A stretch of 64,000 nt of DNA from assembly GCA_002269645.1 (NCBI GenBank), contig NIVC01002470.1, positions 1 through 64,000 of the forward strand, in the 5' to 3' direction. The notes beneath the pieces are model-generated. The model was given only the letters and a program-made list of their open reading frames with translations, was not told where the DNA came from and searched no databases. Shown in pieces: positions 3,663 through 64,000 of the stretch (positions are counted from its first letter, which is position 1; the number at the start of each line of letters is the position of its first letter). The position numbers and the translations under genes are program-made. Source of the stretch: Macrostomum lignano (Eukaryota).

Positions 3663-6365
3663 GTGCTGCCACCTGGCCAGCGTCCCGTCATCTCCCGCTC
3701 CATCCTGGGCTCGGACCTGGCCGGTCGGTTTGCCACGCAGCACCGGCTTGTGGTGCCCGGCGCCGTCTGTGGCGAGCGCCCGCCGCAGCTGTCGCAGCAG
3801 TTCTGCCAGGCGCTGCAGCTGTCCGCTCCCCGACTGCCATCAGTCGATGAAGCCGCCGCGGTGCGACTGCCTGGCGAAGTCGTGGAGCTCAACAGCTGCG
3901 GCCTCCGCCAGATTGCCGGCCTGCCGGGGTCGACGGCAAAGCGCTGGGCCTCCCACCGGCTGCTACCCGGCCGGCCCGGATCCGCGCGCATCGCTGCAAC
4001 CTGCCGATTTGGCACCCAAACTGTCGCCGTCGCCATCAGGTTCGGGCCGATGACGCCGGCCTTCGCCGAGATCAAGAAACCGCAGGTCAGCAAAGCCGCC
4101 GCCGCCGGCAGGCGGTTCTGCTACGCCGCCAGCCACTGCCTGCGTCTGTCGGTGCGACCGGTAGCCGATCTCGGCATCCGACGCCTCCACCCGCTTCGTC
4201 CGGATGGCCGGCACCGCGGCGAGCTGGCGATGGCGTCCGCATCGGCCGCCACAATTCACTTCGGCAGAATCTTCACCGCCAACCCGAGCTGGCAGTTGGA
4301 GGCGCAGAAGCGGCCAGGCGGCCAAGCGGCAGTGCTTTTCTCCGGCGATGTCGGCGGAGATGCCAGCGGCTTCGATGACTCAAAGAAGGCGCCGAGCGAC
4401 GCCAGCGGAGACCGGCGACTGTCCGCCGGCTCTGCCGGGCCGCGGTGGCAGGGGAACAACAGCAACACGAATGACTCGGAATCGCACGGAAGCTCGCGCA
4501 ACTCCGGCTGCTGGGACTATGTGTACCTGAAGTCTGAGAAGGAGGAGATGAGACTGGTTGAGCTGCACGACACGCAGGAGCGCTGCAGCACCGTCAGCAC
4601 CGTCATGGGCGTCGTCGGCTTCAAAGCTCCAATCTTCCTGGCCGTGCCGAACCACCTACTGCCCGCCCGCGCCATCCCCGTCATCTGCGGCAACGTCATC
4701 GAGCTGGGAGACTGGGACGTGAACTGCTCGGAGCCGATGGCGCACACGGCCCAGCTCATGGCGCCTGGCTACGCCTTCTTCGAGGCCAGCGTCTGCTCCA
4801 ACTACAGCGACGAGGAGGAAGTCGAGTTCCGCTTCGCCATCGTGGTGCCCGCGCCCGGCTCTGACTGCCCGGCCAAGTCGGAGCTGTTCGCCTGGGAGGG
4901 CGGCTTCGTCCGCCGGATGTCCGACTACAACAGGCATCCGGACGGCTTCCTGCTGTTCGGCCGGCCCGATCAGCTGCTCGATCCGCGCGACCTGCTGGAG
5001 CTGCCGGCCGGCCCGCCGGCGCGGTCGAAGTCCGTCTGGCCCGGCTGGCTCACCGACGTCGGCCAGGCAATGCTACTATTGCGCCTGCGGCCGCCGCTGC
5101 TGCAGCCCGACCGGACGAGCCTGCTTCACCGGCCACTCGGCGTGGAGCTCTCGGCCAAAGACGCCTCCGGGGCGACGCTGACGCCCAACCTGCGAGGACC
5201 TCTCCTGCTGGAGGGCGCCGAGCTGTACTCGCCGCTGCCTCCGCCTCCGCCTCCGCCTCCGCCTTCAACGGTGAAATCGTCGCCGCTTTCATCGCTGGAC
5301 GGCGTCGAATGCTCATGTAGCTCGGACGACATGGACGACGATGGCAGCGGCATCAACTGGGTCCGGTTGGCCTCGGCCGCCAGTGCCCGGGTGGAATTCG
5401 CCCAGCAGGTGCCGCTAGGAGGCCCCGTGACCTGCCGCTTCCTGCTGCGCTTCCACGACACCGGCACAAACAGCTGCGACCGCGGCACCTGCGTGGAGGC
5501 CGTCGCCCTGCTGCCCCTGACCGTCGACCTGGCCACTCCTGAGAAGCAAACTGTGACCTGCGACCTGCTGCTGACCGCCTCATCGCAGCAGCACATCGGC
5601 CAGCTGACTGTGGACATTGGAGTGGCCCACTGCTTCCAGCACAGTCCCCTGGACCTTGCTCGCTTTGTAGATCGGTGCGGCGCGACCGCGCCACTCCAGG
5701 ACCCGGCGCCGATTCTTGTCCTGCCAATGCCAGCCACTTGGCTCCTGCCGATGGGCCCCGACACCTGGTCAGCGGCGACTGCGGCGTTTGCGGCAGTGAC
5801 GCCGACCTCCAGGTACTTCGAGCTGCCTGTCGGGGTCTCACAGTCCGGAGTCCTGCGGCTTCTGCGGGCCGACGGCGCCAAGAGCAGCGGGCAGGCGCAG
5901 GACGGCGACCTCTGCCTCGCCTTCCCTCCGGACGCTCGGCTTGTGGTGCGCGTCGTCCTTGACGACTCCGCGCAGGTGAACCGGGGCGCCGACGCCCTGC
6001 TGGCCTCTCTTTTGCCAGCCTCGGAGCGCTGCGTCCTCGTGGCCGCCCACGACCTGCAGCTGTGCCTGGCGCTTAGCCTCAAGCAGTCGCGGCTATCGTT
6101 GGCCTTCTTTGCCGCCAGCGTCTCCGAGGCTGCCGCGGCTCTTGACATCTGCCGGCACTTCGGCCTGCGCGCCGTGGCAGTCCCGGCCGAGCAGCTCTTT
6201 GACGATCGGCCAGATGGGCGGGCGCTGGCGGATGCGGCGAGAGTCTGTGGAGTTGCCCTGTACGCCTACGGCGGCTGCGGGGGTGCTTACGACGCCGGCC
6301 AAGCGGCGACCTTCCATCTGGAGGGAGTCTTCGGCAGCGGCACCGTGGTGGGCACCGCGCATTGA
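3663..6365 (+). CDS. GPCPD1/GDE5-like protein: CBM20 + C2-like + degenerate glycerophosphodiester phosphodiesterase domain (probable pseudoenzyme); start uncertain (in-frame ATGs at 4050, 4230, 4548)
   Basis: CBM20-like VICGNVIELGDWD...EVEFRFAIV...WEGGFVR. GWLTDVGQAMLLLRL resembles GDE5 GWLTCQTEIRLRL. IGQLTVDIGVAH resembles IGKVRVDYIIIK. The C-terminus DLQLCLALSLKQ...GLRAVAVPAEQL...GVALYAYG follows the GDPD barrel pattern (DICTMVRQKQ...LVIFCWG). Comparisons are from memory. Confidence 0.65.
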   Translation: MLPPGQRPVISRSILGSDLAGRFATQHRLVVPGAVCGERPPQLSQQFCQALQLSAPRLPSVDEAAAVRLPGEVVELNSCGLRQIAGLPGSTAKRWASHRLLPGRPGSARIAATCRFGTQTVAVAIRFGPMTPAFAEIKKPQVSKAAAAGRRFCYAASHCLRLSVRPVADLGIRRLHPLRPDGRHRGELAMASASAATIHFGRIFTANPSWQLEAQKRPGGQAAVLFSGDVGGDASGFDDSKKAPSDASGDRRLSAGSAGPRWQGNNSNTNDSESHGSSRNSGCWDYVYLKSEKEEMRLVELHDTQERCSTVSTVMGVVGFKAPIFLAVPNHLLPARAIPVICGNVIELGDWDVNCSEPMAHTAQLMAPGYAFFEASVCSNYSDEEEVEFRFAIVVPAPGSDCPAKSELFAWEGGFVRRMSDYNRHPDGFLLFGRPDQLLDPRDLLELPAGPPARSKSVWPGWLTDVGQAMLLLRLRPPLLQPDRTSLLHRPLGVELSAKDASGATLTPNLRGPLLLEGAELYSPLPPPPPPPPPSTVKSSPLSSLDGVECSCSSDDMDDDGSGINWVRLASAASARVEFAQQVPLGGPVTCRFLLRFHDTGTNSCDRGTCVEAVALLPLTVDLATPEKQTVTCDLLLTASSQQHIGQLTVDIGVAHCFQHSPLDLARFVDRCGATAPLQDPAPILVLPMPATWLLPMGPDTWSAATAAFAAVTPTSRYFELPVGVSQSGVLRLLRADGAKSSGQAQDGDLCLAFPPDARLVVRVVLDDSAQVNRGADALLASLLPASERCVLVAAHDLQLCLALSLKQSRLSLAFFAASVSEAAAALDICRHFGLRAVAVPAEQLFDDRPDGRALADAARVCGVALYAYGGCGGAYDAGQAATFHLEGVFGSGTVVGTAH

Positions 6366-23119: not shown

Positions 23120-26100
23120 GCCATCATCTAACGCGACTTCTGCCTGTCGGGGGTGCGGCCTGTTGGCGAGTGGGACGTCCTGGTCGCCTGTTGGCTCGGG
23201 CAGGCCGGTTAGTTCATCCGGCCGGCTGTTCTGTCCGCTGTCGCGTTTCCCGGGGCCACTCGGCCACTCGCCTGGGAGACTCGCTTGACGTGGGTGGCGT
23301 GCCTGGAGCACCTCTGGCCGCCCCTCTGGAGCTGCAGGGTGTTGCCGTGGACTTTTGTCACAGTCCATGGCGAGACCTCAAAGAAGGGGTCGGTCTTGCT
23401 GCGGTTGGTGAGCCGGCGGAGTAAGCGGTCGCCTTCGGTGATCTGGTGGTCGGTGGCGCCCCTCTTGCTGTCGGCGAAGGCCTTCATCCGCTACTTGGCC
23501 CTGAAGTCGTGGTCGCGGACGGTCCGTCGCCTGGCATCAACCGGACGGGAGTGGCGCAAGCTGGGGATCGTGTCGTTGAGCTGTCGGCCGAATAGCAGGT
23601 CGGCTGAGGCCATGCCGGTTGCTGCGTGCGGTGTTCGCCGGTATGCAGCTAGGTAGTCGTCCAGTGCCACCTGCCAGTCGCTGCCTTCCAGGATCGCCGC
23701 TCTGATTGCCTTATTGAGGCCTCGGTTGCATCTCTCTACGAGTCCCTTGGCTTGGGGATGCAACGGCGTAGTCCGATGGTAGTGGACGCGCTGGCTGCTC
23801 AAGAAGGCGTTGAATTCTGCGGCCGAGAATGGCGGGCCGTTGTCAGTGGTGATCTTGACTGGCTGGCTGAATATGCTGAACCACTGGCGGAGGGTTCGGA
23901 TGACCGGAGCTGCCGCTGTCGACCCCGACATCGTCTGTACCAGTGGGAAACGTGAAAAGTAGTCGGTGCACACCAGCAGCATGTGGCCTCTGATCGGTCC
24001 CAGGAAGTCCAGGCCCAGCTCTAGCTACGGCCCCCACTCCAGCTTAGTCGGCTGGAGTGGGGCTGCCTTCAGTTCGGCTGTATTCGAGCAGGCCTTGCAG
24101 CTGAGGCAGGAGTTTACAAAGTTCTCGACGGAGGCCCGCATTGAGGGCCACCAGACCTTTGTCTGGAGGCGTGCCATTGTTTTCTGGACATCCAGGTGGC
24201 CTTGGTGCGCCAGCTGCAGGCAGCGGTAGCTCAGAATGGCGGGAACGACGATTCGGTGCCCTTTGAGCAGGAGTCCGTCGTGTTGTGAGAGCTCGTGCCG
24301 CAGGCCGTGCAGGCTGCGCGTGTCGTGGCTATCGAGTTGCCACCGATGGGACCGGAGCCTGGATACGGCGGCTTGGATCGCCTTGTCGCCTGCGGCGGCA
24401 ACCTCCTTGATCGTGTCGAGGCTGATGCTGTTCGGCGCTGCTGCCTGTGCTGTCAATGCGATGTAGGCCGTGTCGAGGTCCTCGCCCTCGTTGTTCGGCG
24501 GTGTTGGACGTGGCTGCAGGCGGCTCAGGACATCTGCCGGGTTGTCTGCGCCCGGCTGGTAGGTGACTTCGAAGTGGAGATCCTGCAGCCGAAGTGCCAT
24601 GCGCTCGATCCGCGGCGGGGGCCGCGAGCCGGGGCTGAGCAGGCTGACCAGCGGCTTGTGGTCGGTGATGACCTTGAACTTTGGGCAGCCGCTAAGGTAG
24701 TGGTGAAACTTGAGGCAGCCGAATTTTTGACGACCAGCGCCTCCCTCTCTGTCTGCGAGTAGCGCTGCTCGGTGTCACTGAGGCTGCGGCTGGCGTAGGC
24801 GATTGGCCTGGTGAGGCCGCCAGGTTGCACCTGGGCGAGGATCGCCCCGAGGCCGGTCGGGCTGGCGTCGACGATCAGCCTGGTCTCGCAGTTCTTGTTG
24901 AAGTAGGCAAGCGTCGTGCTGTGAGCGATCGACTGCTTGATTGACTGAAAGGCTGAGGCTTGCTGTGGACCCCACGACAATTTCACGCTCTTCTTGGTCA
25001 GCTCTCGAAGTGGCCTCGCTTTGTCGGCGAGGTTTGGGATGAAGCGGGCTACGAATGTGACGAGCCCGAGGAAGGACCGCACCTCCGTTGCATTTTCTGG
25101 TCGCTTGAAATTGGCCACAGCTTCCAGCTTTTCCTCGGTCGGTTGGATTCCGGCCGCCGAGAGGCGCATGGCCAGGAAGTCGGCCTGCTGGGTTGCAATG
25201 CGGCATTTGCGGGGGTTCAGAGTCACGTTGTGTTGGCACAGCCTGTCAAGGCAGTTGCGCAGCCTCTCGTTGTGCTCCTTTATGGTGCTGGCGAAGATAA
25301 TGATGTCGTCGTAGACCCACCGCACGCCTCTCAAACCGCTCAGGATAGATGTCATGACGCGCTCTAGGATTTCGGATGCTGAGGTAAATCCCATGCAAAG
25401 GCGCTTGAGGCGGAGCAGGCCCAGAGGCGTTGAGAAAGTGAGCAGCTGCCGGGACTCCTCGCTGACCTCGAACTGGTGGAAGGCCTTGGCAACGTCTAGT
25501 TCGGAGAAATAGGTGGAGCCGGCCATCTCGTCGGTGACTTCTTCGAATGTCGGTATTGGCTGTTTTTCTGGGATGACGTACTTATTCACGTCCCTCAGGT
25601 CCTGCGTGATGCGGATCTCGCCTGGCGAGGCCTTTGGAACGACCACCATGCGTGAACTCCAAGCGCTGGGCCCCGTCACTCGCTCCAGGATGCCGGCTGC
25701 TAGCTGGTCCTTCAGCTCCTTTTCCACGGCGGTTCGAAGATGCACCGGAACTCGAGACGGAGGGTGGCAGACAGGCACCGCTTCTTCCTTCAGCTGGATG
25801 CTGACTGAGACGCCCTTGACGCAGCCGATTCCTTGAAACCTGTCGCTGAACTCCTTCATGATCGATGACAGTCGCAGGTCTTGCGGAAGGTGCTGGTCGT
25901 TGACTGTTGGTGTCAGTCCGGCAGTGAGAGCTGTCTCGGCCTGCGGTCCGACCCTCAGCATCCCCATCTGCGTGCTTGTTTCGCGACCTAGAATTGTGAT
26001 GCAGTCTTCTCTGATGACGATGAAGCGCACTCTCTCCGAATTGCCGTTGATCTTCGTGTGCAGAGTGATCTGGCCGGCGGGTGTCAGGGGCCTCGCTGCT

Positions 26101-26447
26101 CCGAGAGGATAGACTCTTGTGTGCGTGGGCTGAAGCGCCCTCTGGGGTTCTCCCGTTAGACGAAGGGTCTGCTGGCTGAGCACGTTGCAGCTCGCGCCAC
26201 TGTCGATCAGGACGGATACGTTCGAGCCGTTGATGACCGCTTTGAAGGTGGCGCTTTTGCGGCTGGGGTCGAGGCTGGAGAATACCTCCAGACTGCTGGT
26301 TCCTCTGGCTCAGGCTCTACCATGTTGATGCGTGCGCGGCTGCTTAGGCACGCCTTCGCCAGGTGGTGCAGCTTTCCGCAGTTGCTGCAGCGCTTGCCTT
26401 GGGCTCGGTTGCATGTGCGTTGGCCGGGCTCTCCCGGTTCCATAAAA
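23120..26447 (-). mobile_element. Decayed Ty3/Gypsy gag-pol fragment (zinc knuckle, protease, RT, RNase H, integrase); several frameshifts, no LTRs seen
   Basis: CSNCGKLHHLAKAC (CCHC knuckle); LIDSGASCN protease (~26196-26204); RT with LCMG and YDD (~25305-25313); RNase H DAS...YSQTERE; integrase zinc finger HQGHL...CLSC, VCTDYFSRF, TTDNGPPF, GLVERCNR. The PR-RT-RH-IN order is the Gypsy arrangement. Confidence 0.92.
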
Positions 26448-30088: not shown

Positions 30089-47348
<17,260 letters not shown>

Positions 47349-48052
47349 AGTATTTGGACGATGCTTTGCGTTATTGTAGAGGCAGATTTTCATCTTAGCT
47401 GTTTGCGGTGCAGCGCTTCCCTAAGTTTGCTTGTAGAATTTGAATAGCAACCTGTGCCATTTTCCTGACAATCTGTCTATCTAATTATTGCTTCTAAAAG
47501 CAAAAGCAACATCGCGTCTTCCCGAGGTGTTAAGAAAGTATTGCAGTGCCCTATGGTATTCTATTGTCACCCTACTGGTATAAACTTCCCATTGCGAATT
47601 GCAATTAACCGCCGCAACGCTTTGTTTAACCTGTCTTAATCCTCTTGGAATTATCTGACAACAGACAATGGGAGCTCGCTTTTGATCGCTTATTTTATTT
47701 ATTATTCTCCAATGCTTAAATTTCTGTCAACTCTCAGCTTCCGCTGTTTTTTTCGGCTTTTGTCTCCGCCCATGCATACGAAGTTGTAATTGCATTAGCC
47801 AGCATGTTCAGCATGTTTAAATAAACTCCCCACTATTTTCACTGTGCGTCTTGTCAATGCTTTGTTATTTCGCTATTTCTGAGCTTCGAGTTTATCGGTC
47901 CAGCGATAGGCAGCTACACTACTGAAAGTAGTTGATTATATGAGCGCCTATCGCATTTCAGCTTGATGTCGCTTTAGCGCCAGTGTCGCAAAAACACTAA
48001 CAAAAATAGCTTTTTGCGCGCAATTTTTCGGGCGGCAAACATCAAACAAGAC

Positions 48053-50247
48053 ATGGCGACATCAAAGGCGCCGCCGGTATCAACAGCTGATGACGGAGAT
48101 GGCAGCGACAGCGACTGCCAGATCGTTGGCTGCACCCTGTCACCGCCGAAGAAGCAGCCCAGCCGGCAGAGCAGCTTGTTCGACTTCTTCGGCCCCAAGA
48201 GTGCCGGCTGCGGCGGCGGTGGAGAGACAGAGTCTGCTTCCAAAAAGAAGAATCGGCCTCAGCAGAAGCAGAAAGAGAACCGTCGCAAGAGAAGCCTCGA
48301 ATTCGACGATCTGGATCACTTCGCTAGCGGCAGCATTGAGCAGCGGAAGAAAGCGGAGGCTGAGGCGGATGCGGCGGCTGATGAAGATGACGAAGCGACG
48401 AGGGACTCCACGGCGGCGGATGCTGTTGAGCAGCCCTACTATGCCAGGTGGTTTGCCCACATTGTGTCCACGGTGAGTCATTGGCCCTGAGTCATTGTCC
48501 CTGAGTCATCGTCCTTTAGTCATTGGCCCTGACTCATTGTCCTTTAGTCATTGTCTCTGACTCATTGTCCTTTAGTCATTTACCCTGACTCATTGTCATT
48601 TAGTCATTGTCCCTGACTCATTGTCCTTTAGTCATTGTCCCTGACTCATTGTCCTTTAGTCATTGGCCCTGACTCATTGTCCTTTAGTCATTTGCCCTGA
48701 CTCATTGTCATTTAGTCATTGGCCCTGACTCATTGTCCTTTAGTCATTGTCCCTGACTCATTGTCCTTTAGTCATTTGCCCTGACTCATTGTCATTTAGT
48801 CATTGTCCCTGACTCATTGTCCTTTAGTCATTGTCCCTGACTCATCGTCCTTTAGTCATTGGCCCTGACTCATTGTCCTTTAGTCATTGGCCCTGACTCA
48901 TTGTCCTTTAGTCATTGGCCCTGACTCATCGTCCTTTAGTCATTGGCCCTGACTCATTGTCCTTTAGTCATTGGCCCTGACTCATTGTCCTTTAGTCATT
49001 GGCCCTGACTCATCGTCCTTTAGTCATTGGCCCTGACTCATTGTCCTTTAGTCATTGGCCCTGACTCATTGTCCTTTAGTCATTGGCCCTGACTCATTGT
49101 CCTTTAGTCATTGGCCCTGACTCATCGTCCTTTAGTCATTGGCCCTGACTCATTGTCCTTTAGTCATTGTCTCTGACTCATTGTCCTTTAGTCATTGGCC
49201 CTGACTCATTGTCCTTTAGTCATTGGCCCTGACTCATCGTCCTTTAGTCATTGGCCCTGACTCATTGTCCTTTAGTCATTGGCCCTGACTCATTGTCCTT
49301 TAGTCATTGGCCCTGACTCATTGTCCTTTAGTCATTGGCCCTGACTCATCGTCCTTTAGTCATTGGCCCTGACTCATTGTCCTTTAGTCATTGGCCCTGA
49401 CTCATTGTCCTTTAGTCATAGTCTCTGACTCATTGTCCTTTAGTCATTGTCTCTGACTCATTGTCCTTTAGTCATTGGCCCTGACTCATCGTCCTTTAGT
49501 CATTGTCTCTGACTCATTGTCCTTTAGTCATTGTCCTTTAGTCATTGTCATTTAGTCATTTATTCCTTTAGTAATTGGCTGGCCGGATGAAGTGTGTGCT
49601 AAATAGTTAGCTTTCAATCTGCGATTTGTGCAACACGCACGAGTCCGGGTGCTGATGGATCTGCATGCCTGTGATTTGTGCCTGCCCTGCGGCGCTGGCT
49701 CACGCATGCATCAATAAATATCGGCTCGAGAGCGAGTTCGAGTTCGAGACTGCTCTGAGCTGTTTTGTAATTTTTTGAAAATCTCTTTAAACATGGCTAC
49801 AAGCTGGTGTGAGCACCTTTTGCTTAGCTTGGTTGGTTTGGAGTGGCCTCGCCATCCGTTTCCGCTGCAACTGAATGGCGGACTGAGATGCCTGCGCACT
49901 TCATCACCTTCTGCTCCACTGATCAATAAGCGGCCCCGCTTTTGTTGTGGGAGGAGAAAGGAGGGAATAGGATGGATAGGAGAGCTGCATAGTGCGGCAG
50001 GCAGACACACTAAGACCTAGGACACAGGTACAGACACAAAAATACTAAGGCAAAGCATAAAACCACTGGGACAGTAGGAAGCTAAAATAATCTTTCAACA
50101 ATATCACTGAAGCAGGCTTAGTCTCGTGTCTTCACAGAACTTGTACATCAATTCCCATTACTTTTTTTACATCAGTTATATAGTTTCATAGTTACTTTGA
50201 TGTGACTTTAGTTACTTTAACCATGAAACTAAAGAACTAATGCACTA

Positions 50248-50304
<57 letters not shown>

Positions 50305-50311
50305 CTAAGGC

Positions 50312-50388
<77 letters not shown>

Positions 50389-50411
50389 CTAAGACAGACA
50401 GACAGACACTA

Positions 50412-50468
<57 letters not shown>

Positions 50469-50491
50469 CTAAGACAGACAGACAGACAGGC

Positions 50492-50547
<56 letters not shown>

Positions 50548-50599
50548 GGACAGAGACTGAGACAGACGGACAGACACTGAGACAGACGGACAGACACTG

Positions 50600-50631
<32 letters not shown>

Positions 50632-50665
50632 GGACAGAGACTGAGACAGACGGACAGACACTGAG

Positions 50666-50696
<31 letters not shown>

Positions 50697-53600
50697 CTAA
50701 GACAGACAGACACGAAGGCAGACGGAAGGCAGACATAGTATCTGACCAAGCCACACCAATCCTCTGTCCCCAGGTGTCGGAGGACGCCGACCTGGCCTTC
50801 TTGTTCTCGCCTGAGCAGCGCCACCTGCTGGCCGCCGCGGCTCGGCTTTCGCCGGAGAGGCCGGAGCTGCGCTTGCTGGCCCGCCTGCTGTGCCGGGCGC
50901 GCCGCTTCCACCGGCCCGGCCGGCTGCGCTACCCGGAGCTCGGCGCGCCGCCAGAGCTGGCTGCCGCGGGTCTCGCCGAGCTCGGCCTGGTCGAGAGCCT
51001 CGCCGAAGCGTCGCCGGCGCCGGAGCTCGCTGAACTGCTGTCGCTGTGCAGCTGCCCGGAGCTGATCGACGTTGCCAAGCGGCTCGGCGGCGGCGTCGCC
51101 AGCAGCCTCGTCGGGGCCGGGCGGCGGCGCGACGGCCTCACCCGGACACTGCTGCGGGCCAGCGCCAACTCGCTGTCTGGCGGGGCTTTCTGCTCAACGC
51201 CGCGGCCCGCCGCCGCATGCCGGGTGCGCCGCGCCGTCCTGGCCGCCATCGGGCCGGCGTGGCGGCTGCGACCGGCGGCTGCCGACCTGCTGGAGGCCGC
51301 CTTTCTGGCGTTCCACATCGAGCTGCACGATACGGAGGCCGCTAACGTGTTCCAGGTGTGGACTGATTTGAGAGCAGCATGAGAACTTTGCAACAGGTCT
51401 CCACTTGATCCCATTCGTTCCCAATTGATCTCATTCATTCCCAATTGATCCCATTTATTCCTAATTGATCCCATTCGTTCCCAATTGATCCCATTTATTC
51501 CTAATTGATCCCATTCGTTCCCAATTGATCTCATTCATTCCTAATTGATCCCATTCATTCCCAATTGATCCCATTTATTCCTAATTGATCCCATTCGTTC
51601 CCAATTGATCTCATTCATTCCTAATTGATCTCATTCATTCCCGATTGATCCCATTCATTCCCGATTGATCCCATTCATTCCCGATTGATCCCATTCATTC
51701 CCAGTTGATCCCATTCATTCCCAGTTGATCCCATTCATTCCCAATTGATCCCATTCATTCCCAATTGATCCCATTCATTCCCAGTTGATCCCATTCATTC
51801 CCAGTTGATCCCATTCATTCCCAGTTGATCCCATTCATTCCCGATTGATCCCATTCATTCCCAGTTGATCCCATTCATTCCCAGTTGATCCCATTCATTC
51901 CCAATTGATCCCATTCATTCCCAATTGATCCCATTCATTCCCAGTTGATCCCATTCATTCCCGATTGATCCCATTCATTCCCAGTTGATCCCATTCATTC
52001 CCAGTTGATCCCATTCATTCCCAGTTGATCCCATTCATTCCCAATACAACAGGTACTATCGATTTTCAATGTGTTTCATCCATTATTGATAGATCCCAAT
52101 GGTCCTCACTAGATCCCAATGGTCCTCACTAGATCCCAATGGTCCTCACTAGATCCCAATGGTCCTCACTAGATCCCAATGGTCCTCACTAGATCCCAAT
52201 GGTCCTCACTAGATCCCAATGGTCCTCACTAGATCCCAATGGTCCTCACTAGATTCCAATGGTCCTCACTAGATCCCAATGGTTCTCACTAGATGCCACA
52301 AAAAATACCAGTAGAACAACCAGCTCCATCAATTCTCTCGCCCAGGACCTGCTGTACCGCCTGCGCCGCATCGAGCTGGGCGCGGAGCCGGAGCCGCTGC
52401 CGGCCGAGCTGGTGCAGGGCAAGGCGACCGCCTACTGCAGCCTGTACCCGGACCCCGCAGCCCTGCTAGCCTACCTGGAGGCCGTGCGGCTCGAGCGCCG
52501 GCTTCGCGACCTGCAGCAGCGCCGCCAGTTCCTCCAGCTGGAGGACGCCTTCACTGAGGCCGGCTGGCCGGGCCGACTGCAGCGGGCCATCGACGGCAGC
52601 GACGGCGGGTGCCTTAGCTGCCTGGCCGAGTCCGTGCCGGTGCACCTGCGGCGCTTCACCGAGCTGGGTGCCGTGTTTCGCGCGGCCGACATTCGGGCGG
52701 CGACATTGGAACGGCTGCGGCGCTACCCGGAAGCGGTCAGGCAGTACAACCTGCTGCTGGGACCCGTGTGGCCATCCGATCAGGTTTTTCGCCCGGTTTT
52801 GCTCTGGCTTGCTATGTTTTTTGCCCCATTTCCAGGCGAAGAACATAAACCAGGCGAATTTATCCGGTTTTTCTCTGCCTTTCTAAACCAGGCGAAATTC
52901 CGGAGGAAAAACCGTACGAGTGCTCTGGTTTTTTACCCGGTCCTTCGCCAGGTTTGGAACCAGTTTAGTAACGCAGGCAAATCCGGAGTAAAAGCGGATG
53001 AAATAACAATTCCGCCTGGAATTTTGCCCGGTTCTTTCTCTGGTTCTTCGACCGGACAAGAGCCGGAGAAAAGAGCTGGTGAAAGCCTTTAATTCAGGAT
53101 TGGGTTGAAAATGGTATGGGAGACACAGTGTATAATTGACAATTGACATGAAGATTTTCTTGTAATTGTATGTCCTGTAATGTGCTCCTGTTTTGTTCTC
53201 TTGCAGTATTTTTTCCGCTCGTCTTTATATATACCATATGAGCGTCTTCGTATGTTACATTACGAGCGTAGTTCACGTAAACTGAGAATAAAAATATTGT
53301 CATTTTAATGCTGTCATCGCACACATTTCTGAAGGCTGCATGCTACTGTGGGATTCCAACATACTTTTGGCCAGTCAGAAGTGATTTTAAATTCCCGCAT
53401 TTATGCGCCTAGATGACTAGCGACTATGCGCCTACTGACTGTATTCTACAACATCTTTGGAATAAAAAAACAGAGGAGTATATTGATCTTGTAGGTGATT
53501 TGGAACAGTTTGATGAATTGCAAGATGGAACGTTACATATTTTGTATTAACACTGACAATTGTCTTACTTCTTCACTCTTCACGGTATCCGTTGACAGAA

Positions 53601-56298
53601 GCGCACTGTAGATGTTTTACTAAGTCGGCACTACATATTTCCGAGAGTAGACACAATTTGATAGGGATGCAGGGTTTTTCGTCCGGTTTGATCGTCGTGT
53701 CGCTTTCGTTAGGTTTTAGTCTTTTTGCTCCGGGTATTCGTCCGGTTGGGTCGTCGTGTCGCTTTCGTTAGGTTTTAGTCTGATTTTGCTCCGGATATTC
53801 GTCCGGTTGGGTCGTCGTGTCGCTTTCGTTAGGTTTTAGTCTGATTTTGCTCCGGATATTCGTCCGGTTGGGTCGTCGTGTCGCTTTCGTTAGGTTTTAG
53901 TCTGATTTTGCCTCGGTTATTTGCCGGGTTCTGCTATTGCACTTTCATCCGGTCATTTGTCGGGTTTTATTCAGGGTACTCATCAGTTTGAGTAGCCGAA
54001 GAGAAACCCGAGAAAATACCTGATGTCCTCTACGAAATTCCTGACGAACAACCAGACGAAACTGCCGTCTTCGTCCGTTTTCGAGACCACTTTCCCGAGG
54101 ATTTTCGGGTTTTTAGATAGGAAAAAATGTATTACAAACCGGGCAAAAATCCCGATCGCCTACCGGGCTAAAAACCTGATCAGATGGCCACACGGGGACA
54201 ACAGGTGCGCTGTGGTGGCGTCTGTTGGGGTTTCTGTTCGGGTTTCTGTTGCGGTTTCTGTTGCGGTTTCTGTTGGGGTTTCTGTCGGGGTTTCTGTTGG
54301 GGTTTCTGTTGGGGTTTCTGTTGGGGTTTCTGTTGCGGTTTTTGTTGGGGTTTCTGTTCGGGTTTCTGTTGCGGTTTCTGTTGGGGTTTCTGTTGCGGTT
54401 TTTGTTGGGGTTTCTGTTCGGGTTTCTGTTGCGGTTTTTGTTGGGGTTTCTGTTCGGGTTTCTGTTGCGGTTTCTGTTGGGGTTTCTGTTCGGGTTTCTG
54501 TTGCGGTTTCTGTTCGGGTTTCTGTTCGGGTTTCTGTTGCGGTTTCTGTTCGGGTTTCTGTTGGGGTTTCTGTTGGTGTTTCTGTTGGTGTTTCTGTTGG
54601 TGTTTCTGTTGGTGTTTCTGTTGGGGTTTTTGTTGCGGTTTCTGTTAGGGTTTCTGTTGGCGTTTCTGTTGGCGTTTCTGTTAGGGTTTTTGTTGGTGTT
54701 TCTGTTGGTGTTTCTGTTGGTGGTGTTTCTGTTGGGGTTTCTGTGGTTGTTTTTGTTGGGGATTTTACTAGGTGTTTCGGTGGGTGTTCGGGTTTGGCTT
54801 CAGAGGGTTTCTGTATTTCGAATGTGGTTCCCGAATGTCGCCGGGTTCAGGCCTCTAAGCCCGCAGCCCGCCCCCCCTTCCCCACCTGTCCGCAGGTGCT
54901 GCTGACGCGGTCTCGCCACCGGCGCCACCTCCGCCTTGCGCTGCTGCTCGATCGGCACCAGCGGGACCCCAGCGCCGCATTTAGCGTCATTTCCCGCGCC
55001 CTGGCCGAGCCGGGCCTCTGTCCGGCCGCCCGGCGCGAGCTCGCCCAGCGGGCCGCCTCTTTGGCCGCCCGCACCGGTGTCCCGTCCACCTGTCCGCTGG
55101 TGGCTGCCGCCCTGGCCGAGCAACCGCGGGAGCCGCCGGCGCGAGCGGAAATCTACGGCGCCACCGTCTCGCACAGCCTGCCAGGCAGGGTGAACGTTTT
55201 CCTAGAAAGCGGCGCCGGCGCCGGCGAGGACGCCGTCTGCAGCGTGGAGCGCGTGGCCCTGGACCACTACCGCTCCCTGGACGGGGGCGCCTTTCCGCGC
55301 GGCCTGCACGCCGAGGGGGCGCCATTTCACGCGCTATTTTTCTTATTACAGCGCGAGGCCCTGTTCGCGCCTCTGCCTGGCGCTTTTCTATCGCGCTATC
55401 AGCGCCGAGCGCCACTCGATCTGCGCTATCCGGCCCAGTTTCTGGCCGCCGGCGGCCGGCGAGCGGCCCTCGAGGCGGGGCTGCGGCGACTACGCAGCGC
55501 GGAGCTTCAGGAGGCCGGCCAGCTGGAGCTGCTGATCCGGCAGGAAGCAGAGAGAGACCCGGGACTCCTGCTTGGGGAGCGGGTGAGGACGCAGAATCCA
55601 TCCCGGATGGCACTTTCGTAAACTCTTATTATGGGGATTGCACTCTCACCTGACTGAGGTCATAAATCCCTATTATGGGGATTGCACTCTCACCTGACTG
55701 AGGTCATAAATCTCTATTATGGGGATTTTACCCCCACTTGAGGTCATAAATCCCTATTATGGGGATTTTACTCCCACCTGAGGTCATATATCCCTATTAA
55801 TGTGATTGCACTCTCACCTGAATGAGGTCATAAATCCTCAAGTTCCTTCATCCCCACATCAAAATCCAAATCGAACTCCCGCAGGTGAGCCTGGATGACC
55901 TGTGCAGCCTGGCTGAGGCCCTGCCCCGGGACCTTCTGGCCGGCATTCTGGCCGAGCTGGGGGAGAACTATGACCAGCTGCATGCCGGCATGCCCGACCT
56001 GCTGCTGTGGTGCCCCGCCAGCCGGCGCTGCCTGTTCGCCGAGGTCAAGGGCCCCGGGGACCAGCTGTCCGCCAAGCAGACCCTCTGGCTCGCCCGGCTT
56101 GAGCGCCTGGGCGCCCGCTCCGAGGTCTGCGTGGTGCGCGCCGAGCAGGGCGGCCTTCTGCGGCGCCGGCTGCGGCTCTCCGCGGCCGCCGACCAATCGA
56201 CACAGCCGGAGGCGGTTGAGGAGGCGCAGGCGGAAGCTGCAATGGAGCCGAAGCGACTGCGAGGGGAGCACGAAGATGAGGGACAAGCCGCTGGGTGA
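48053..56298 (+). CDS. FAN1: Fanconi-associated nuclease 1 (FAN1) ortholog, 5 exons, about 846 aa, with VRR-NUC domain
   Basis: Exons: 48053-48472, 50774-51355, 52346-52783 (donor lies in a transposon TIR, see findings), 54896-55582, 55885-56298; all phase 0. Motifs: PYYARWF (FAN1 PYYLRSF), [37 protein letters not shown]...[18 protein letters not shown] (PD-(D/E)xK nuclease). The C-terminus may be spliced further. Confidence 0.9.
48473..49570. repeat. 28-bp minisatellite gactcattgtcctttagtcattggccct (2 x 14-bp subunits) (FAN1 intron 1)
   Basis: The array grows directly out of the donor GTGAGTCATTGGCCCT. Confidence 0.95.
50250..50735. repeat. (GACA)n microsatellite (FAN1 intron 1)
   Basis: Visible; ends about 40 bp before the acceptor. 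Confidence 0.95.
51405..52292. repeat. Two related 20-bp arrays, gatcccattcattcccaatt (51405-52045) and agatcccaatggtcctcact (52090-52292) (FAN1 intron 2)
   Basis: Visible; both share a gatccca core. Confidence 0.92.
52763..54196. mobile_element. Non-autonomous DNA transposon (CACTA/EnSpm-like by its CCC termini and 2-bp TSD), 1434 bp, inserted in FAN1 exon 3
   Basis: 35-bp TIRs at 52763-52797 and 54162-54196 (CCCGTGTGGCCATCCGATCAGGTTTTTCGCCCGGT; 2 mismatches). GA is duplicated at 52761-62 and 54197-98. About 60-bp subterminal tandem repeats at 53680-53910. No transposase ORF. Confidence 0.85.
54222..54765. repeat. 12-bp minisatellite gggtttctgttg (FAN1 intron 3)
   Basis: Begins about 17 bp after the ancestral donor at 54205. 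Confidence 0.92.
55628..55830. repeat. About 44-bp degenerate tandem repeat tattatggggattgcactctcacctgactgaggtcataaatccc (FAN1 intron 4)
   Basis: About 5 copies visible. Confidence 0.85.
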
Positions 56299-56760
56299 CT
56301 CCCAGATCCCTAATCCGCTCTCCCAGATCCGCTGTCTACTCTCTCCCAGATCCCCCAATCCGCTCTCCCAGATCCTCAGTCTACTCTCTCCCAGATCCTC
56401 AGTCTACTCTCCCAGATCCTCAGTCTACTCTCTCCCAGATCCTCAGTCTACTCTCCCAGATCCTCAGTCTACTCTCTCCCAGATCCCCCAATCCGCTCTC
56501 CCAGATCCTCAGTCTACTCTCTCCCAGATCCTCAGTCTACTCTCTCCCAGATCCTCAGTCTACTCTCCCAGATCCTCAGTCTACTCTCTCCCAGATCCCC
56601 CAATCCGCTCTCCCAGATCCGCAGTCTGCTCTCTCCCAGATCCCCCAATCCGCTCTCCCAGATCCTCAGTCTACTCTCTCCCAAATCCCCAGTCTACTCT
56701 CTCCCAGATCCGCAGTCTGCTCTCTCCCAGATCCTCAGTCTACTCTTCCAGATCCTCCGA
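56299..56760. repeat. Pyrimidine-rich array ctctcccagatcctcagtctact immediately after the FAN1 stop
   Basis: Visible. Confidence 0.9.
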
Positions 56761-58539: not shown

Positions 58540-60296
58540 CCATCCCGATTCACCAACCCCAAAACACCCATCCCAAAACAACCACCCCAAAACATCAACC
58601 CCAAAATACTCACCCTAAAACACTCACCCCAAAACACTCACCCTAAAACACTCACCCCAAAACACCCACCCCAAAATACTCACCCCAAAACACTCACCCC
58701 AAAACACTCACCCTAAAACACTCACCCCAAAACACCCACCCCAAAACACCCACCCCAAAACACTCACTTCAAAACACCCACCCCAAAATACTTACCCTAA
58801 AACACTCACCCTAAAACACCCACCACAAAACACCCACCCCAAAACACCCACCCCAAAACACCCACCCCAAAACACTCACCCTAAAACACTCACCCCAAAA
58901 CACTCACCCTAAAACACTCACCCCAAAACACCCACCCCAAAATACTCACCCCAAAACACTCACCCCAAAACACTCACCCTAAAACACTCACCCCAAAACA
59001 CCCACCACAAAACACCCACCCCAAAACACTCACTCCAAAACACCCACCCCAAAATACTTACCCTAAAACACTCACCCTAAAACACTCACGCCAAAACTCT
59101 CACCCCAAAGCACTCACCCCAAAACACTCACCCTAAAATACTCACCCTAAAACACTCACCCCAAAACACTCACCCCAAAACACTCACCCTAAAATACTCA
59201 CCCTAAAACACTCACGCCAAAACTCTCACCCCAAAACACTTACCCTAAAACACTCACCCTAAAACACCCACCCCAAAACACCCACCCCAAAACACCCACC
59301 CCAAAACACTCACCCTAAAACACTCACCCCAAAACACTCACCCTAAAACACTCACCCCAAAACACCCACCCCAAAATACTCACCCCAAAATACTCACCCC
59401 AAAACACTCACCCCAAAACACTCACCCTAAAACACTCACCCCAAAACACCCACCCCAAAATACTCACCCCAAAACACTCACCCCAAAACACTCACCCTAA
59501 AACACTCACCCCAAAACACCCACCACAAAACACCCACCCCAAAACACTCACTCCAAAACACCCACCCCAAAATACTTACCCTAAAACACTCACCCTAAAA
59601 CACTCACGCCAAAACTCTCACCCCAAAGCACTCACCCCAAAACACTCACCCTAAAATACTCACCCTAAAACACTCACCCCAAAACACTCACCCCAAAACA
59701 CTCACCCTAAAATACTCACCCTAAAACACTCACGCCAAAACTCTCACCCCAAAACACTTACCCTAAAACACTCACCCTAAAACACCCACCCCAAAACACC
59801 CACCCCAAAACACCCACCCCAAAACACTCACCCTAAAACACTCACCCCAAAACACTCACCCTAAAACACTCACCCCAAAACACCCACCCCAAAATACTCA
59901 CCCCAAAATACTCACCCCAAAACACTCACCCCAAAACACTCACCCTAAAACACTCACCCCAAAACACCCACCACAAAACACCCACCCCAAAACACTCACT
60001 CCAAAACACCCACCCCAAAATACTTACCCTAAAACACTCACCCTAAAACACTCACGCCAAAACTCTCACCCCAAAGCACTCACCCCAAAACACTCACCCT
60101 AACATACTCACCCTAAAACACTCACCCTAAAACACTCACCCCAAAACACTCACCCTAAAATACTCACCCTAAGACACTCATCCCAAAACACTCACCCCAA
60201 AACACTCACCCTAAAATACTCACCCTAAGACACTCATCCCAAAACACCCACTCAAAACACCCACCCAAAACACCCACCCCAAAACACCACCTAAAA
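58540..60296. repeat. 14-bp minisatellite aaaacactcacccc/aaaacactcaccct with higher-order blocks
   Basis: The marker block acgccaaaactctcaccccaaagcac recurs near 59090, 59605 and 60055. Confidence 0.93.
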
Positions 60297-60699: not shown

Positions 60700-63600
60700 T
60701 GTACCTGTCTATCCATCTACCTGCACACCCACTCACCTGTCTATCCATCTACCTGCACACCCACTCACCTGTCTATCCATCTACCTGCACACCCACTCAC
60801 CTGTCTATCCATCTACCTGCACACCCACTCACCTGTCTATCCATCTACCTGCACACCCACTCACCTGTCTATCCATCTACCTGCACACCCACTCACCTGT
60901 CTATCCATCTACCTGCACACCCACTCACCTGTCTATCCATCTACCTGCACACCCACTCACCTGTCTATCCATCTACCTGCACACCCACTCACCTGTCTAT
61001 CCATCTACCTGCACACCCACTCACCTGTCTATCCATCTACCTGCACACCCACTCACCTGTCTATCCATCTACCTGCACACCCACTCACCTGTCTATCCAT
61101 CTACCTGCACACCCACTCACCTGTCTATCCATCTACCTGCACACCCACTCACCTGTCTATCCATCTACCTGCACACCCACTCACCTGTCTATCCATCTAC
61201 CTGCACACCCACTCACCTGTCTATCCATCTACCTGCACACCCACTCACCTGTCTATCCATCTACCTGCACACCCACTCACCTGTCTATCCATCTACCTGC
61301 ACACCCACTCACCTGTCTATCCATCTACCTGCACACCCACTCACCTGTCTATCCATCTACCTGCACACCCACTCACCTGTCTATCCATCTACCTGCACAC
61401 CCACTCACCTGTCCATCCATCTACCTGCACACCCACTCACCTGTCTATCCATCTACCTGCACACCCACTCACCTGTCTATCCATCTACCTGCACACCCAC
61501 TCACCTGTCTATCCATCTACCTGCACACCCACTCACCTGTCTATCCATCTACCTGCACACCCACTCACCTGTCCATCCATCTACCTGCACACCCACTCAC
61601 CTGTCTATCCATCTACCTGCACACCCACTCACCTGTCCATCCATCTACCTGCACACCCACTCACCTGTCTATCCATCTACCTGCACACCCACTCACCTGT
61701 CTATCCATCTACCTGCACACCCACTCACCTGTCTATCCATCTACCTGCACACCCACTCACCTGTCTATCCATCTACCTGCACACCCACTCACCTGTCTAT
61801 CCATCTACCTGCACACCCACTCACCTGTCTATCCATCTACCTGCACACCCACTCACCTGTCTATCCATCTACCTGCACACCCACTCACCTGTCTATCCAT
61901 CTACCTGCACACCCACTCACCTGTCTATCCATCTACCTGCACACCCACTCACCTGTCTATCCATCTACCTGCACACCCACTCACCTGTCTATCCATCTAC
62001 CTGCACACCCACTCACCTGTCTATCCATCTACCTGCACACCCACTCACCTGTCTATCCATCTACCTGCACACCCACTCACCTGTCTATCCATCTACCTGC
62101 ACACCCACTCACCTGTCTATCCATCTACCTGCACACCCACTCACCTGTCTATCCATCTACCTGCACACCCACTCACCTGTCTATCCATCTACCTGCACAC
62201 CCACTCACCTGTCTATCCATCTACCTGCACACCCACTCACCTGTCCATCCATCTACCTGCACACCCACTCACCTGTCTATCCATCTACCTGCACACCCAC
62301 TCACCTGTCTATCCATCTACCTGCACACCCACTCACCTGTCTATCCATCTACCTGCACACCCACTCACCTGTCTATCCATCTACCTGCACACCCACTCAC
62401 CTGTCCATCCATCTACCTGCACACCCACTCACCTGTCTATCCATCTACCTGCACACCCACTCACCTGTCCATCCATCTACCTGCACACCCACTCACCTGT
62501 CTATCCATCTACCTGCACACCCACTCACCTGTCTATCCATCTACCTGCACACCCACTCACCTGTCTATCCATCTACCTGCACACCCACTCACCTGTCTAT
62601 CCATCTACCTGCACACCCACTCACCTGTCTATCCATCTACCTGCACACCCACTCACCTGTCTATCCATCTACCTGCACACCCACTCACCTGTCTATCCAT
62701 CTACCTGCACACCCACTCACCTGTCTATCCATCTACCTGCACACCCACTCACCTGTCCATCCATCTACCTGCACACCCACTCACCTGTCTATCCATCTAC
62801 CTGCACACCCACTCACCTGTCTATCCATCTACCTGCACACCCACTCACCTGTCTATCCATCTACCTGCACACCCACTCACCTGTCCATCCATCTACCTGC
62901 ACACCCACTCACCTGTCTATCCATCTACCTGCACACCCACTCACCTGTCCATCCATCTACCTGCACACCCACTCACCTGTCCATCCATCTACCTGCACAC
63001 CCACTCACCTGTCTATCCATCTACCTGCACACCCACTCACCTGTCCATCCATCTACCTGCACACCCACTCACCTGTCTATCCATCTACCTGCACACCCAC
63101 TCACCTGTCTATCCATCTACCTGCACACCCACTCACCTGTCTATCCATCTACCTGCACACCCACTCACCTGTCTATCCATCTACCTGCACACCCACTCAC
63201 CTGTCTATCCATCTACCTGCACACCCACTCACCTGTCTATCCATCTACCTGCACACCCACTCACCTGTCTATCCATCTACCTGCACACCCACTCACCTGT
63301 CTATCCATCTACCTGCACACCCACTCACCTGTCTATCCATCTACCTGCACACCCACTCACCTGTCTATCCATCTACCTGCACACCCACTCACCTGTCTAT
63401 CCATCTACCTGCACACCCACTCACCTGTCTATCCATCTACCTGCACACCCACTCACCTGTCCATCCATCTACCTGCACACCCACTCACCTGTCTATCCAT
63501 CTACCTGCACACCCACTCACCTGTCTATCCATCTACCTGCACACCCACTCACCTGTCTATCCATCTACCTGCACACCCACTCACCTGTCCATCCATCTAC

Positions 63601-64000
63601 CTGCACACCCACTCACCTGTCTATCCATCTACCTGCACACCCACTCACCTGTCCATCCATCTACCTGCACACCCACTCACCTGTCTATCCATCTACCTGC
63701 ACACCCACTCACCTGTCTATCCATCTACCTGCACACCCACTCACCTGTCCATCCATCTACCTGCACACCCACTCACCTGTCTATCCATCTACCTGCACAC
63801 CCACTCACCTGTCTATCCATCTACCTGCACACCCACTCACCTGTCTATCCATCTACCTGCACACCCACTCACCTGTCTATCCATCTACCTGCACACCCAC
63901 TCACCTGTCTATCCATCTACCTGCACACCCACTCACCTGTCTATCCATCTACCTGCACACCCACTCACCTGTCTATCCATCTACCTGCACACCCACTCAC
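60700..64000. repeat. Highly homogeneous 32-bp minisatellite ctgcacacccactcacctgtctatccatctac, about 100 copies, running off the window
   Basis: Period 32; essentially one variant position (gtctat/gtccat). Confidence 0.97.

Follow-up and report, generated by a model that had tools for sequence, protein, structure and literature searches.

A DNA transposon in coding exon 3 of one FAN1 copy of Macrostomum lignano and its probable bypass through a host splice donor

At least three copies of FAN1, 98-99% identical to one another, are present in Macrostomum lignano line DV1, and one of them carries a DNA transposon within coding exon 3, inserted 6 nt before the donor of that exon. Through the insertion the normal donor came to lie 1.4 kb away, and translation reading into the element now meets an in-frame stop. 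Overall, the explanation that best fits these observations, and which is considered probable, is that the insertion is bypassed mainly through a host donor ending at position 52735, that the allele is tolerated, and that the donor-like GT in the terminal repeat of the element is no adaptation. The copy is contained in M. lignano scaffold NIVC01002470.1:1-64000, referred to here as the window, that is, the whole 64,000-nt stretch of DNA that was analysed, and to which all positions refer.

The FAN1 gene and its copies

Both the source and the gene are established by M. lignano FAN1 models, which matched at 91-100% identity. On the forward strand, exon 1 (48053..48472) starts at the ATG, ends at the donor ACG|GTGAGT and is part of the exact reconstruction of the GenBank protein PAA57576.1; exon 2 (50774..51355) ends at CAG|GTGTGG; the host part of exon 3 as far as the insertion point (52346..52762) encodes DLLYRL...RQYNLLLG of the TPR domain and is spanned by a Pfam FAN1_TPR match; exon 4 (54896..55582) follows the acceptor ccgcag|GTG; and exon 5 (55885..56298) encodes the VRR-NUC nuclease domain, with an intact PDLLLW...EVKGPGD, and includes the stop codon. 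All FAN1 introns are in phase 0. Removal in silico of 52763-54196 together with one GA copy gives an open FAN1 frame of 841 aa, in which LLLGQQ is followed by GTGCGC at 54205.

The encoded protein has the architecture of a FAN1 nuclease, with VRR-NUC at the C-terminus (PF08774, 68.5-68.7 bits) and the FAN1 TPR domain upstream of it (PF21170, 48.2 bits in the intact copy). Human FAN1 structures (4RI8, 4RI9, 4REA and others) were matched at E about 1e-47 and share with the M. lignano protein the succession of HTH/SAP-like region, TPR and VRR-NUC; both species retain the PD...(D/E)xK motif, PDLLLW...EVKGPGD being aligned with human PDLVVW...EVKGPND. At about 841 aa, M. lignano FAN1 is shorter than the full-length human entry 9gy0_A, which has 1,021 residues, and no UBZ region was identified in it, since the alignment with the human protein leaves out the N-terminal 125 residues. 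A resemblance to vertebrate FAN1 around the insertion site had been noted when the DNA was first read; a 24-residue segment of the human protein aligns without gaps to its M. lignano counterpart across that site.

The exons of the FAN1 copies are 97-99.8% identical, and the element is found solely in the window copy. The empty site reconstructed in the sequence-only reading, and proposed there as something to look for in paralogs, was recovered to the letter in two further genomic copies (L001 and L003) as CTGCTGCTGGGACAACAG|GTGCGC, which encodes LLLGQQ|VLLTRSR. Both have a single GGGACAAC and contain the exact string CTGCTGCTGGGACAACAGGTGCGC, without the repeat, and their DNA around the ancestral exon-3 donor is identical. 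Three M. lignano proteins (P0006, P0007 and P0009) read one 13-residue string across the exon 3/4 junction. The insertion is later than the divergence of the FAN1 copies. Just upstream of it, the window copy is marked by the variant GACATTGGAACGG, with ACACTAGAACGG as the counterpart in the other copies, and ACATTGGAACGG is a nearby window-copy variant for which the other copies again have ACACTAGAACGG. Lineage-specific synonymous and non-synonymous changes number 8:8 in the window copy and 10:8 and 14:5 in the others, counts that give no clear sign of decay in the window copy and are too small to show relaxed constraint on it. An inverted second copy of the locus lies on the same scaffold, NIVC01002470.1.

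The inserted element

The inserted DNA (52763..54196, no strand assigned) is a class II cut-and-paste DNA transposon of 1,434 bp and about 42% GC, non-autonomous, with terminal inverted repeats and repeated 17-nt subterminal motifs. The left repeat CCCGTGTGGCCATCCGATCAGGTTTTTCGCCCGGT (52763..52797, forward strand) and the right repeat (54162..54196, reverse strand) are each 35 nt long and complementary at 33/35 positions (94%). A 27-nt repeat probe matched only these two arms in the 64 kb, and none of 100 shuffles gave a match. All 6 occurrences of the 17-nt motif GGTTTTTCGCCCGGTTT in the 64 kb fall within the element, against an expectation of 0.15, and the element also includes an internal tandem repeat (53678..53911) with a 61-bp unit, 3.9 copies and 97% matches.

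The flanks read ...CTGGGA|CCCGTG... on the left and ...CACGGG|GACAACAG on the right. The target-site duplication is either GA, with its left copy at 52761..52762 on the forward strand, or GGAC (52760-52763) if the element begins at 52764, and in both cases the empty site equals the flanks minus one duplicate. Since the 2-bp and 4-bp duplications fit equally well, no superfamily is named; duplications of 3, 8 or 9 bp were considered and are incompatible with the flanks. On the right, the second GA copy is followed by the stranded hexamer CAACAG, which encodes QQ and once closed the ancestral exon 3 (54197..54204, forward strand), and by the ancestral donor GTGCGC (54205..54210, forward strand), which is still used in both empty-site copies. 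A minisatellite with a 12-bp unit (54221..54761) belongs to host intron 3, outside the element, and is likewise found in the empty-site copies. The repeats, the duplication and the empty site bear out the initial interpretation that a DNA transposon landed in coding exon 3, 6 nt upstream of the original donor.

The element lacks a transposase gene of its own. Its longest reading frames, of 45-109 aa, had no Pfam match at E <= 1 and, when concatenated, no relative at E <= 10 among 5.8 billion proteins; an Rfam scan of 52000-55000 matched no RNA family. When the complete element was compared by blastn with the window and with L001-L003, L005 and L006, about 150 kb in all, it matched itself alone, and the repeat pattern gave 0 matches in viral contigs. 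A single metagenome match to the repeat pattern was dismissed as chance, being in a bacterial contig beside a cysteinyl-tRNA-synthetase-like gene and having no similarity past 21 nt.

Splicing around the insertion

Upon retention of the element, read-through translation meets its first in-frame stop, a TAA, at 53090..53092 on the forward strand, exactly where it had been anticipated, and use of the old donor would truncate FAN1 before the nuclease domain. The GenBank protein PAA57576.1 (P0005) corresponds exactly to exons 1-2, positions 52346-52735 and exons 4-5. Its donor at 52735|52736, 27 nt upstream of the insertion, is the host sequence GCG|GTCAGG (52733..52741, forward strand, last exon base 52735), the use of which removes 11 residues from the TPR domain; the empty-site copies carry this donor sequence too, and it is identical in all three. 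The GenBank models were derived from RNA-seq, not ab initio, by means of STAR, StringTie and TACO (isoform-frac 0.75) together with a mapped de novo transcriptome (PMC5730564). On a matrix built from only 10 local donors the 52735 site scored 7.7 bits, the ancestral donor 5.9, CCC|GTGTGG 4.4 and the CAG|GTTTTT of the left repeat -0.1; among the GT dinucleotides of the window, the 52735 site is at the 96.6th percentile and the repeat donor at the 61st.

From the annotated model, we infer that the mRNA of the window copy would be kept in frame mainly by this pre-existing host donor, spliced to the normal exon-4 acceptor, with the element, the stranded 6 nt and the old intron 3 forming a single intron of 2,160 nt. 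The cost would be the loss of 11 residues from a helix of the TPR domain, a deletion that may or may not be compatible with FAN1 activity. Minor outcomes may include splicing at CAG|GTTTTT or CCC|GTGTGG, skipping of exon 3, and retention of the element with nonsense-mediated decay. Because two intact FAN1 copies remain, it is likely that the window allele is tolerated, as a hypomorph or with near-neutral effect. The strings for the respective junctions into exon 4 are CCCGGAAGCG|GTGCTGCTGACG for the host cryptic donor, CCATCCGATCAG|GTGCTGCTGACG (or GGCCATCCGATCAG|GTGCTGCTGACG) for the repeat donor, CTGCTGGGACCC|GTGCTGCTGACG for a further junction and GGGACAACAG|GTGCTGCTGACG for the intact copies; a repeat-to-repeat splice would give CCATCCGATCAG|ATGGCCACACGG, and the unspliced string is CTGGGACCCGTGTGGCC.

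The RNA-seq mapping behind the annotation allowed up to 1,000 multi-mappings (PMC5730564), and the donor at 52735 is identical in three copies, so that the intact copies, through a minor alternative splice, could be the source of the PAA57576.1 junction in place of the window allele. A rival reading is that the window allele is effectively null, its transcripts using the old donor at 54204 or retaining the element, with the stop at 53090 leading to decay or to a protein without nuclease, and the 52735 junction being contributed by intact-copy reads. The old donor and its intron are indeed unchanged, and loss would be tolerable given two intact copies. However, the old donor requires an exon of 1.86 kb, against 0.58-0.69 kb for the other internal exons, whereas the 52735 donor outscores the ancestral one and sits at a normal exon length; moreover, the remaining frame is fully intact and the synonymous to non-synonymous ratio resembles that of the other copies, an argument that is weak if the insertion is young. 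A null allele is considered unlikely, though by no means far-fetched.

It had also been suggested that the element supplies its own rescue, the left repeat reading GGA CCC GTG TGG CCA TCC GAT CAG|GTTTTT. The reading of the letters was correct: the candidate donor CAG|GTTTTT (52781..52789, forward strand, last exon base 52783) is in phase 0, free of stops and has a perfect exon side, CAG, and its junction from 52783 to 54896 gives an open protein of 846 aa in which QQ is replaced by PVWPSDQ. The rescue as such fared less well, since the RNA-derived PAA57576.1 uses 52735 and the repeat donor scores so poorly. On this reading, with CAG|GTTTTT as the main donor, FAN1 would be left near-intact and the element family would be adapted to self-masking in the manner of introners. 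In favour of this possibility, exactly this junction is present in UniProt A0A1I8IV46, which contains PVWPSDQ and is the sole model with the repeat donor, and the FAN1_TPR profile (PF21170, cut-off 24) scores 35.4 bits for the repeat-donor isoform, compared with 48.2 for the intact protein and 20.9 for PAA57576.1 with its 11-residue deletion. In addition, the GenBank gene set omits transcripts that overlap annotated repeats, a filter that would drop a repeat-donor isoform if the element is annotated as a repeat, so such an isoform may exist and have been hidden.

Against it, A0A1I8IV46 is chimeric, a neighbouring ion-channel gene being fused to FAN1 via a translated 5' UTR and exon 5 being frame-shifted, and it is for these reasons unreliable as transcript evidence; furthermore, an exact look-up among 15 billion proteins returned neither the clean 846-aa product nor those of 840 and 853 aa. 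Of the 11 local donors, 9-11 are GTRAG-like, and CAG|GTTTTT has none of the +3R, +4A and +5G found in them. An in-frame GT in the repeat is unremarkable, because 8/19 of the GT dinucleotides from 52700 to the first stop are in phase 0 and stop-free, and it also speaks against an adapted family that the roughly 150 kb of M. lignano DNA compared held the element only once. The repeat donor as the main donor is held to be distinctly unlikely, and its donor-like GT is probably a by-product of the GGTTTTT contained in the repeated subterminal motif.

A0A1I8IV46 has a bearing on the assembly as well. It belongs to an earlier annotation, presumably that of Wasik et al. 2015, for which the line would have been assembled separately and the models made partly ab initio; the presence of the repeat-encoded PVWPSDQ in it makes an assembly artefact, for instance from a chimeric long read, unlikely. 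The genome is highly repetitive, and the inverted second locus copy on the scaffold suggests that assembly was difficult, but the junctions are clean, showing the inverted repeats, the duplicated target and an empty site that fits to the letter, and the GenBank model of the window copy skips the element using canonical GT-AG sites. Taken with the evidence of the earlier model, an artefactual insertion is scarcely credible.

Relation to other exonic insertions and to introners

The FAN1 case is a fresh example of a known phenomenon, namely an exonic transposon tolerated via cryptic splicing and gene redundancy. Exonic DNA transposons are reportedly removed from mRNA by cryptic splicing in maize Ds, dSpm and Mu alleles, in work attributed to Wessler and colleagues, and the same is said of an exonic Tc1 insertion in C. 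elegans, as described by Rushforth and Anderson in 1996. As in these systems, an inverted-repeat element has landed in a coding exon, the frame is wholly or partly saved by splice sites of the nearby host exon or of the element ends, and small protein deletions or insertions and leaky alleles are the result. Unlike them, the FAN1 insertion lies 6 nt from an existing donor, and a shifted donor would lengthen the intron 3 already there, with no new intron arising; its RNA support consists of annotation that is not allele-specific, and the host has two further intact copies of the gene.

Introners are a kind of transposon from which spliceosomal introns arise (Gozashti et al. 2022, PMC9860276; 2025, PMC12130899; review PMC11282704). 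In certain introner families, for example in Aureococcus, a small number of additional codons stays behind in the transcript. Neither flatworms nor Macrostomum are mentioned in the main text of Gozashti et al. 2022 (PMC9860276). The FAN1 element shares with introners the repeats, the short target duplication and the GT and AG dinucleotides in its ends. In the right repeat, CTGATCAG|ATG is a candidate acceptor, though a weak one, with 54184 as its first exon base; its upstream pyrimidine fraction of 0.45 is the poorest of 12, compared with 0.50-0.85 in 11 real acceptors. Splicing from repeat to repeat would leave 36 nt, made up of 21 nt of the left repeat, 13 nt of the right repeat and the 2-nt duplication, which recalls the Aureococcus introners and, being a multiple of three, would keep any frame, a property that also agrees with an element adapted to self-masking. 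In contrast, introners are defined by many near-identical copies acting as introns in unrelated genes, and a single copy was found here in about 150 kb; the repeat donor is weak, the RNA-derived model takes the host donor, and at the level of annotation it is the pre-existing intron 3 that is extended from 52735, with no new intron at element-carried or duplication-derived sites. It is very improbable that this element represents a flatworm transposon family whose symmetric ends (…GATCAG|GTTTTT on the left and …CTGATCAG| on the right) serve as donor and acceptor respectively, so that a copy in an exon is spliced out in any phase with 36 nt (12 codons) left behind; if true, an animal introner-like element would have been caught at a young, polymorphic insertion. 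The element has no bearing on intron origin at present, unless a genome-wide survey shows that the family repeatedly supplies splice sites.

With the insertion and the precise empty site represented by neighbouring gene copies of a single genome, the locus is a clean natural example of an existing intron that would swallow an element by a change of donor, for which the protein would lose 11 residues (or gain 5). The damage is buffered by the redundancy of the gene, the DV1 karyotype being partly duplicated. For users of M. lignano, it is of practical relevance that the annotated FAN1 PAA57576.1 has a TPR deletion caused by a transposon, that UniProt A0A1I8IV46 is chimeric and that knock-down and knock-out work has to reckon with three FAN1 copies of unequal kind. 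A retrotransposon pol reading frame also lies within the window and, used as a query, led to one further M. lignano locus only.

The interrupted FAN1 copy and its empty sites

Proteins of M. lignano match the spliced translation of the GC-rich frames around the insertion at 91-100% identity, and sequence comparison identifies the gene as FAN1: its product contains a VRR_NUC domain (68 bits) and a FAN1_TPR domain in Pfam, and is matched by crystal structures of human FAN1 (E ~1e-47). The locus (GenBank NIVC01002470.1:38053-66298, assembly Mlig_3_7) begins at window position 38053, with a large ion-channel gene upstream of FAN1. There are five coding exons, at 48053-48472, 50774-51355, from 52346 to an end that depends on the donor used, 54896-55582 and 55885-56298; all four introns (48053-56298) are in phase 0, so that the frame would be kept if any internal exon, exon 3 included, were skipped. 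The copies also differ by one codon near 55235 in exon 4 (EDAVCSVE in the window copy, EDAVVCSVE in the other two).

The cluster of the first protein match includes three GenBank models, and the exon junction reconstructed in the sequence-only reading is read exactly in PAA57584.1 and PAA49476.1. These are encoded by a second, inverted copy that shares the window's scaffold (L001) and by a copy on scaffold NIVC01003866.1 (L003), both of which carry the empty site, CTGCTGCTGGGACAACAGGTGCGC, and lack the repeat. Exons of the three copies are 97-99.8% identical and the copies are roughly equidistant; since the element is confined to the window copy, the insertion is later than their divergence. 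Human FAN1 aligns with the intact flatworm sequence at the site without gaps, in keeping with the vertebrate likeness proposed in the sequence-only reading, which indicates that GQQ followed by the donor is the ancestral state. The peptide encoded by the repeat is also carried by UniProt A0A1I8IV46, which we take to be the product of an earlier annotation on a separate assembly, and this argues against an assembly artefact.

The inserted element (1,434 bp, 52763-54196) has a GC content of ~42%, against ~65% in the exons, and is bounded by the inverted repeat already proposed, with 35-nt arms at 52763-52797 and 54162-54196 that are complementary at 33 of 35 positions; this repeat is unique within the window and did not arise in 100 shuffles. 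The flanks read ...CTGGGA/CCCGTG and CACGGG/GACAACAG, and the target duplication is GA (2 bp), or GGAC (4 bp) if the element starts one base further in. Inside lie a 61-bp tandem repeat and a 17-nt motif, GGTTTTTCGCCCGGTTT, that occurs six times, mostly clustered near both ends, and is absent from the rest of the 64 kb (0.15 expected). Clustered end-proximal repeats are the usual appearance of transposase-binding subterminal repeats. Protein-database and Pfam searches of the element's reading frames found nothing recognisable encoded, and Rfam gave no match. Removal of the element and one GA restores an open FAN1 of 841 aa, with LLLGQQ followed by GTGCGC as had been claimed, and read-through into the element meets a TAA at 53090-53092.

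Donor choice in exon 3

The two public models of the window copy differ in the donor used. A0A1I8IV46 is joined at the donor inside the repeat (52783/52784), the site that the sequence-only reading had proposed as the rescue; compared with window 45810-56298, however, this model fuses the C-terminus of the ion channel to FAN1 through a translated 5' UTR and is frame-shifted at the start of exon 5, and is therefore untrustworthy as transcript evidence. Similar fusions or frameshifts occur in three other proteins (P0002, P0003 and P0009). PAA57576.1 (830 aa), on the other hand, corresponds residue for residue to exons 1-2, 52346-52735 and exons 4-5, which places its donor at a host site, GCG/GTCAGG, 27 nt upstream of the insertion; its junction reads ...RRYPEA/VLLTRSR and 11 residues are missing. 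RNA-seq underlies the Mlig_3_7 annotation, which used STAR, StringTie and TACO (isoform-frac 0.75), de novo transcripts mapped with BLAT, and TransDecoder (PMC5730564).

Donor strength agrees with PAA57576.1. The 11 protein-supported donors of the window are GTRAG-like (+3R in 11/11, +4A in 9/11, +5G in 11/11), and in a matrix built from ten of these few donors the host cryptic donor (last exon base 52735) scored 7.7 bits, at percentile 96.6 of all window GT dinucleotides. The ancestral donor CAG/GTGCGC (last exon base 54204) reached 5.9 bits (percentile 91.4), CCC/GTGTGG (52765) 4.4 bits (87.7) and the repeat donor CAG/GTTTTT (52783) -0.1 bits (60.9). An in-frame GT at the element end is in itself unremarkable: from 52700 to the stop there are 19 GT dinucleotides, 8 of them in phase 0 and stop-free. 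The GGTTTTT of the repeat donor is simply part of the repeated subterminal motif. Two features of the annotation bear on this choice. Transcripts overlapping annotated repeats were left out of the GenBank gene set, so that an isoform using the repeat donor could have been lost; moreover, reads were permitted to map at many places and the three copies share one sequence at the 52735 donor, so that its junction could come from minor splicing of the intact ones. No clean full-length alternative isoform was found in a collection of 15 billion proteins. Rescue would most likely proceed through the host cryptic donor rather than through the element's own repeat. Because this cryptic donor (52733-52741, also in L001 and L003) outscores the one normally used, the intact copies may themselves yield a minor isoform shorter by 11 aa.

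Known parallels and effect on the protein

After splicing from repeat to repeat (52784..54183), 21 + 13 + 2 = 36 nt would remain in frame and would encode PVWPSDQMATRG; the pyrimidine tract of the acceptor (0.45) is the poorest of 12 sites, the others ranging from 0.50 to 0.85. Classic cases in which cryptic splicing removes or bypasses a DNA transposon lodged in an exon are maize Ds, dSpm and Mu and C. elegans Tc1, and the FAN1 insertion behaves as they do. To introners (PMC9860276, PMC12130899, PMC11282704) the likeness extends only to the repeats, the short target duplication and GT/AG at the ends; introners are defined by many genic copies and by the creation of an intron whose splice sites are carried by the element or co-opted, and the available annotation has no such new intron. 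No second copy of the element was found in ~150 kb of M. lignano DNA, and no relative among proteins or viral contigs. Metagenome contig Ga0116156_10036582 matches the repeat exactly over 21 nt (517-537 of locus L004), beside a cysteinyl-tRNA-synthetase-like gene, but this was dismissed as chance, the contig being bacterial and showing no likeness beyond the pattern. The observation is real and the ancestral reconstruction correct, and the insertion is a fresh instance of a known phenomenon, of modest significance unless the element's family proves, across the genome, to act repeatedly as an intron.

The insertion site falls within the Pfam FAN1_TPR match, which scores 48.2 bits in the intact copy, 35.4 in the repeat-donor isoform (+5 aa) and 20.9 in the annotated -11-aa product (cut-off 24); the downstream nuclease domain is intact in every spliced version. 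As the genome holds two intact copies, it probably tolerates a third that is hypomorphic or even null. Lineage-specific synonymous to non-synonymous counts are 8:8 for the insertion copy and 10:8 and 14:5 for the others, and show no clear decay of the former.

Surroundings of the locus

The inverted second ion-channel and FAN1 locus (L001, NIVC01002470.1:93746-121096, reversed) has exons 98-99% identical to those in the window. Either it is a genuine inverted segmental duplication belonging to the partly duplicated DV1 karyotype, or the assembly contains a fold-back or a mis-join of haplotypes here. A fragmented LTR retrotransposon pol (23491-26183, minus strand), with reverse transcriptase, RNase H and integrase across three reading frames, occupies a gap that separates GC-rich blocks and is apparently within an intron of the ion-channel gene; its closest relative is M. 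lignano BOX15_Mlig023251g6 (52% identity). Minisatellites with 12-32-bp units crowd introns and intergenic DNA (45001-45654, 48474-49560, 51401-52298, 54221-54761, 56318-56757, 58556-60291 and 60703-64000), the one at the window's end repeating a 32-bp unit 103 times at 99% identity, a load that fits the reported repeat-rich genome of M. lignano. Near the window start, a GC-rich open frame of 900 aa (3663-6365, plus strand) is probably part of another gene or a large exon.
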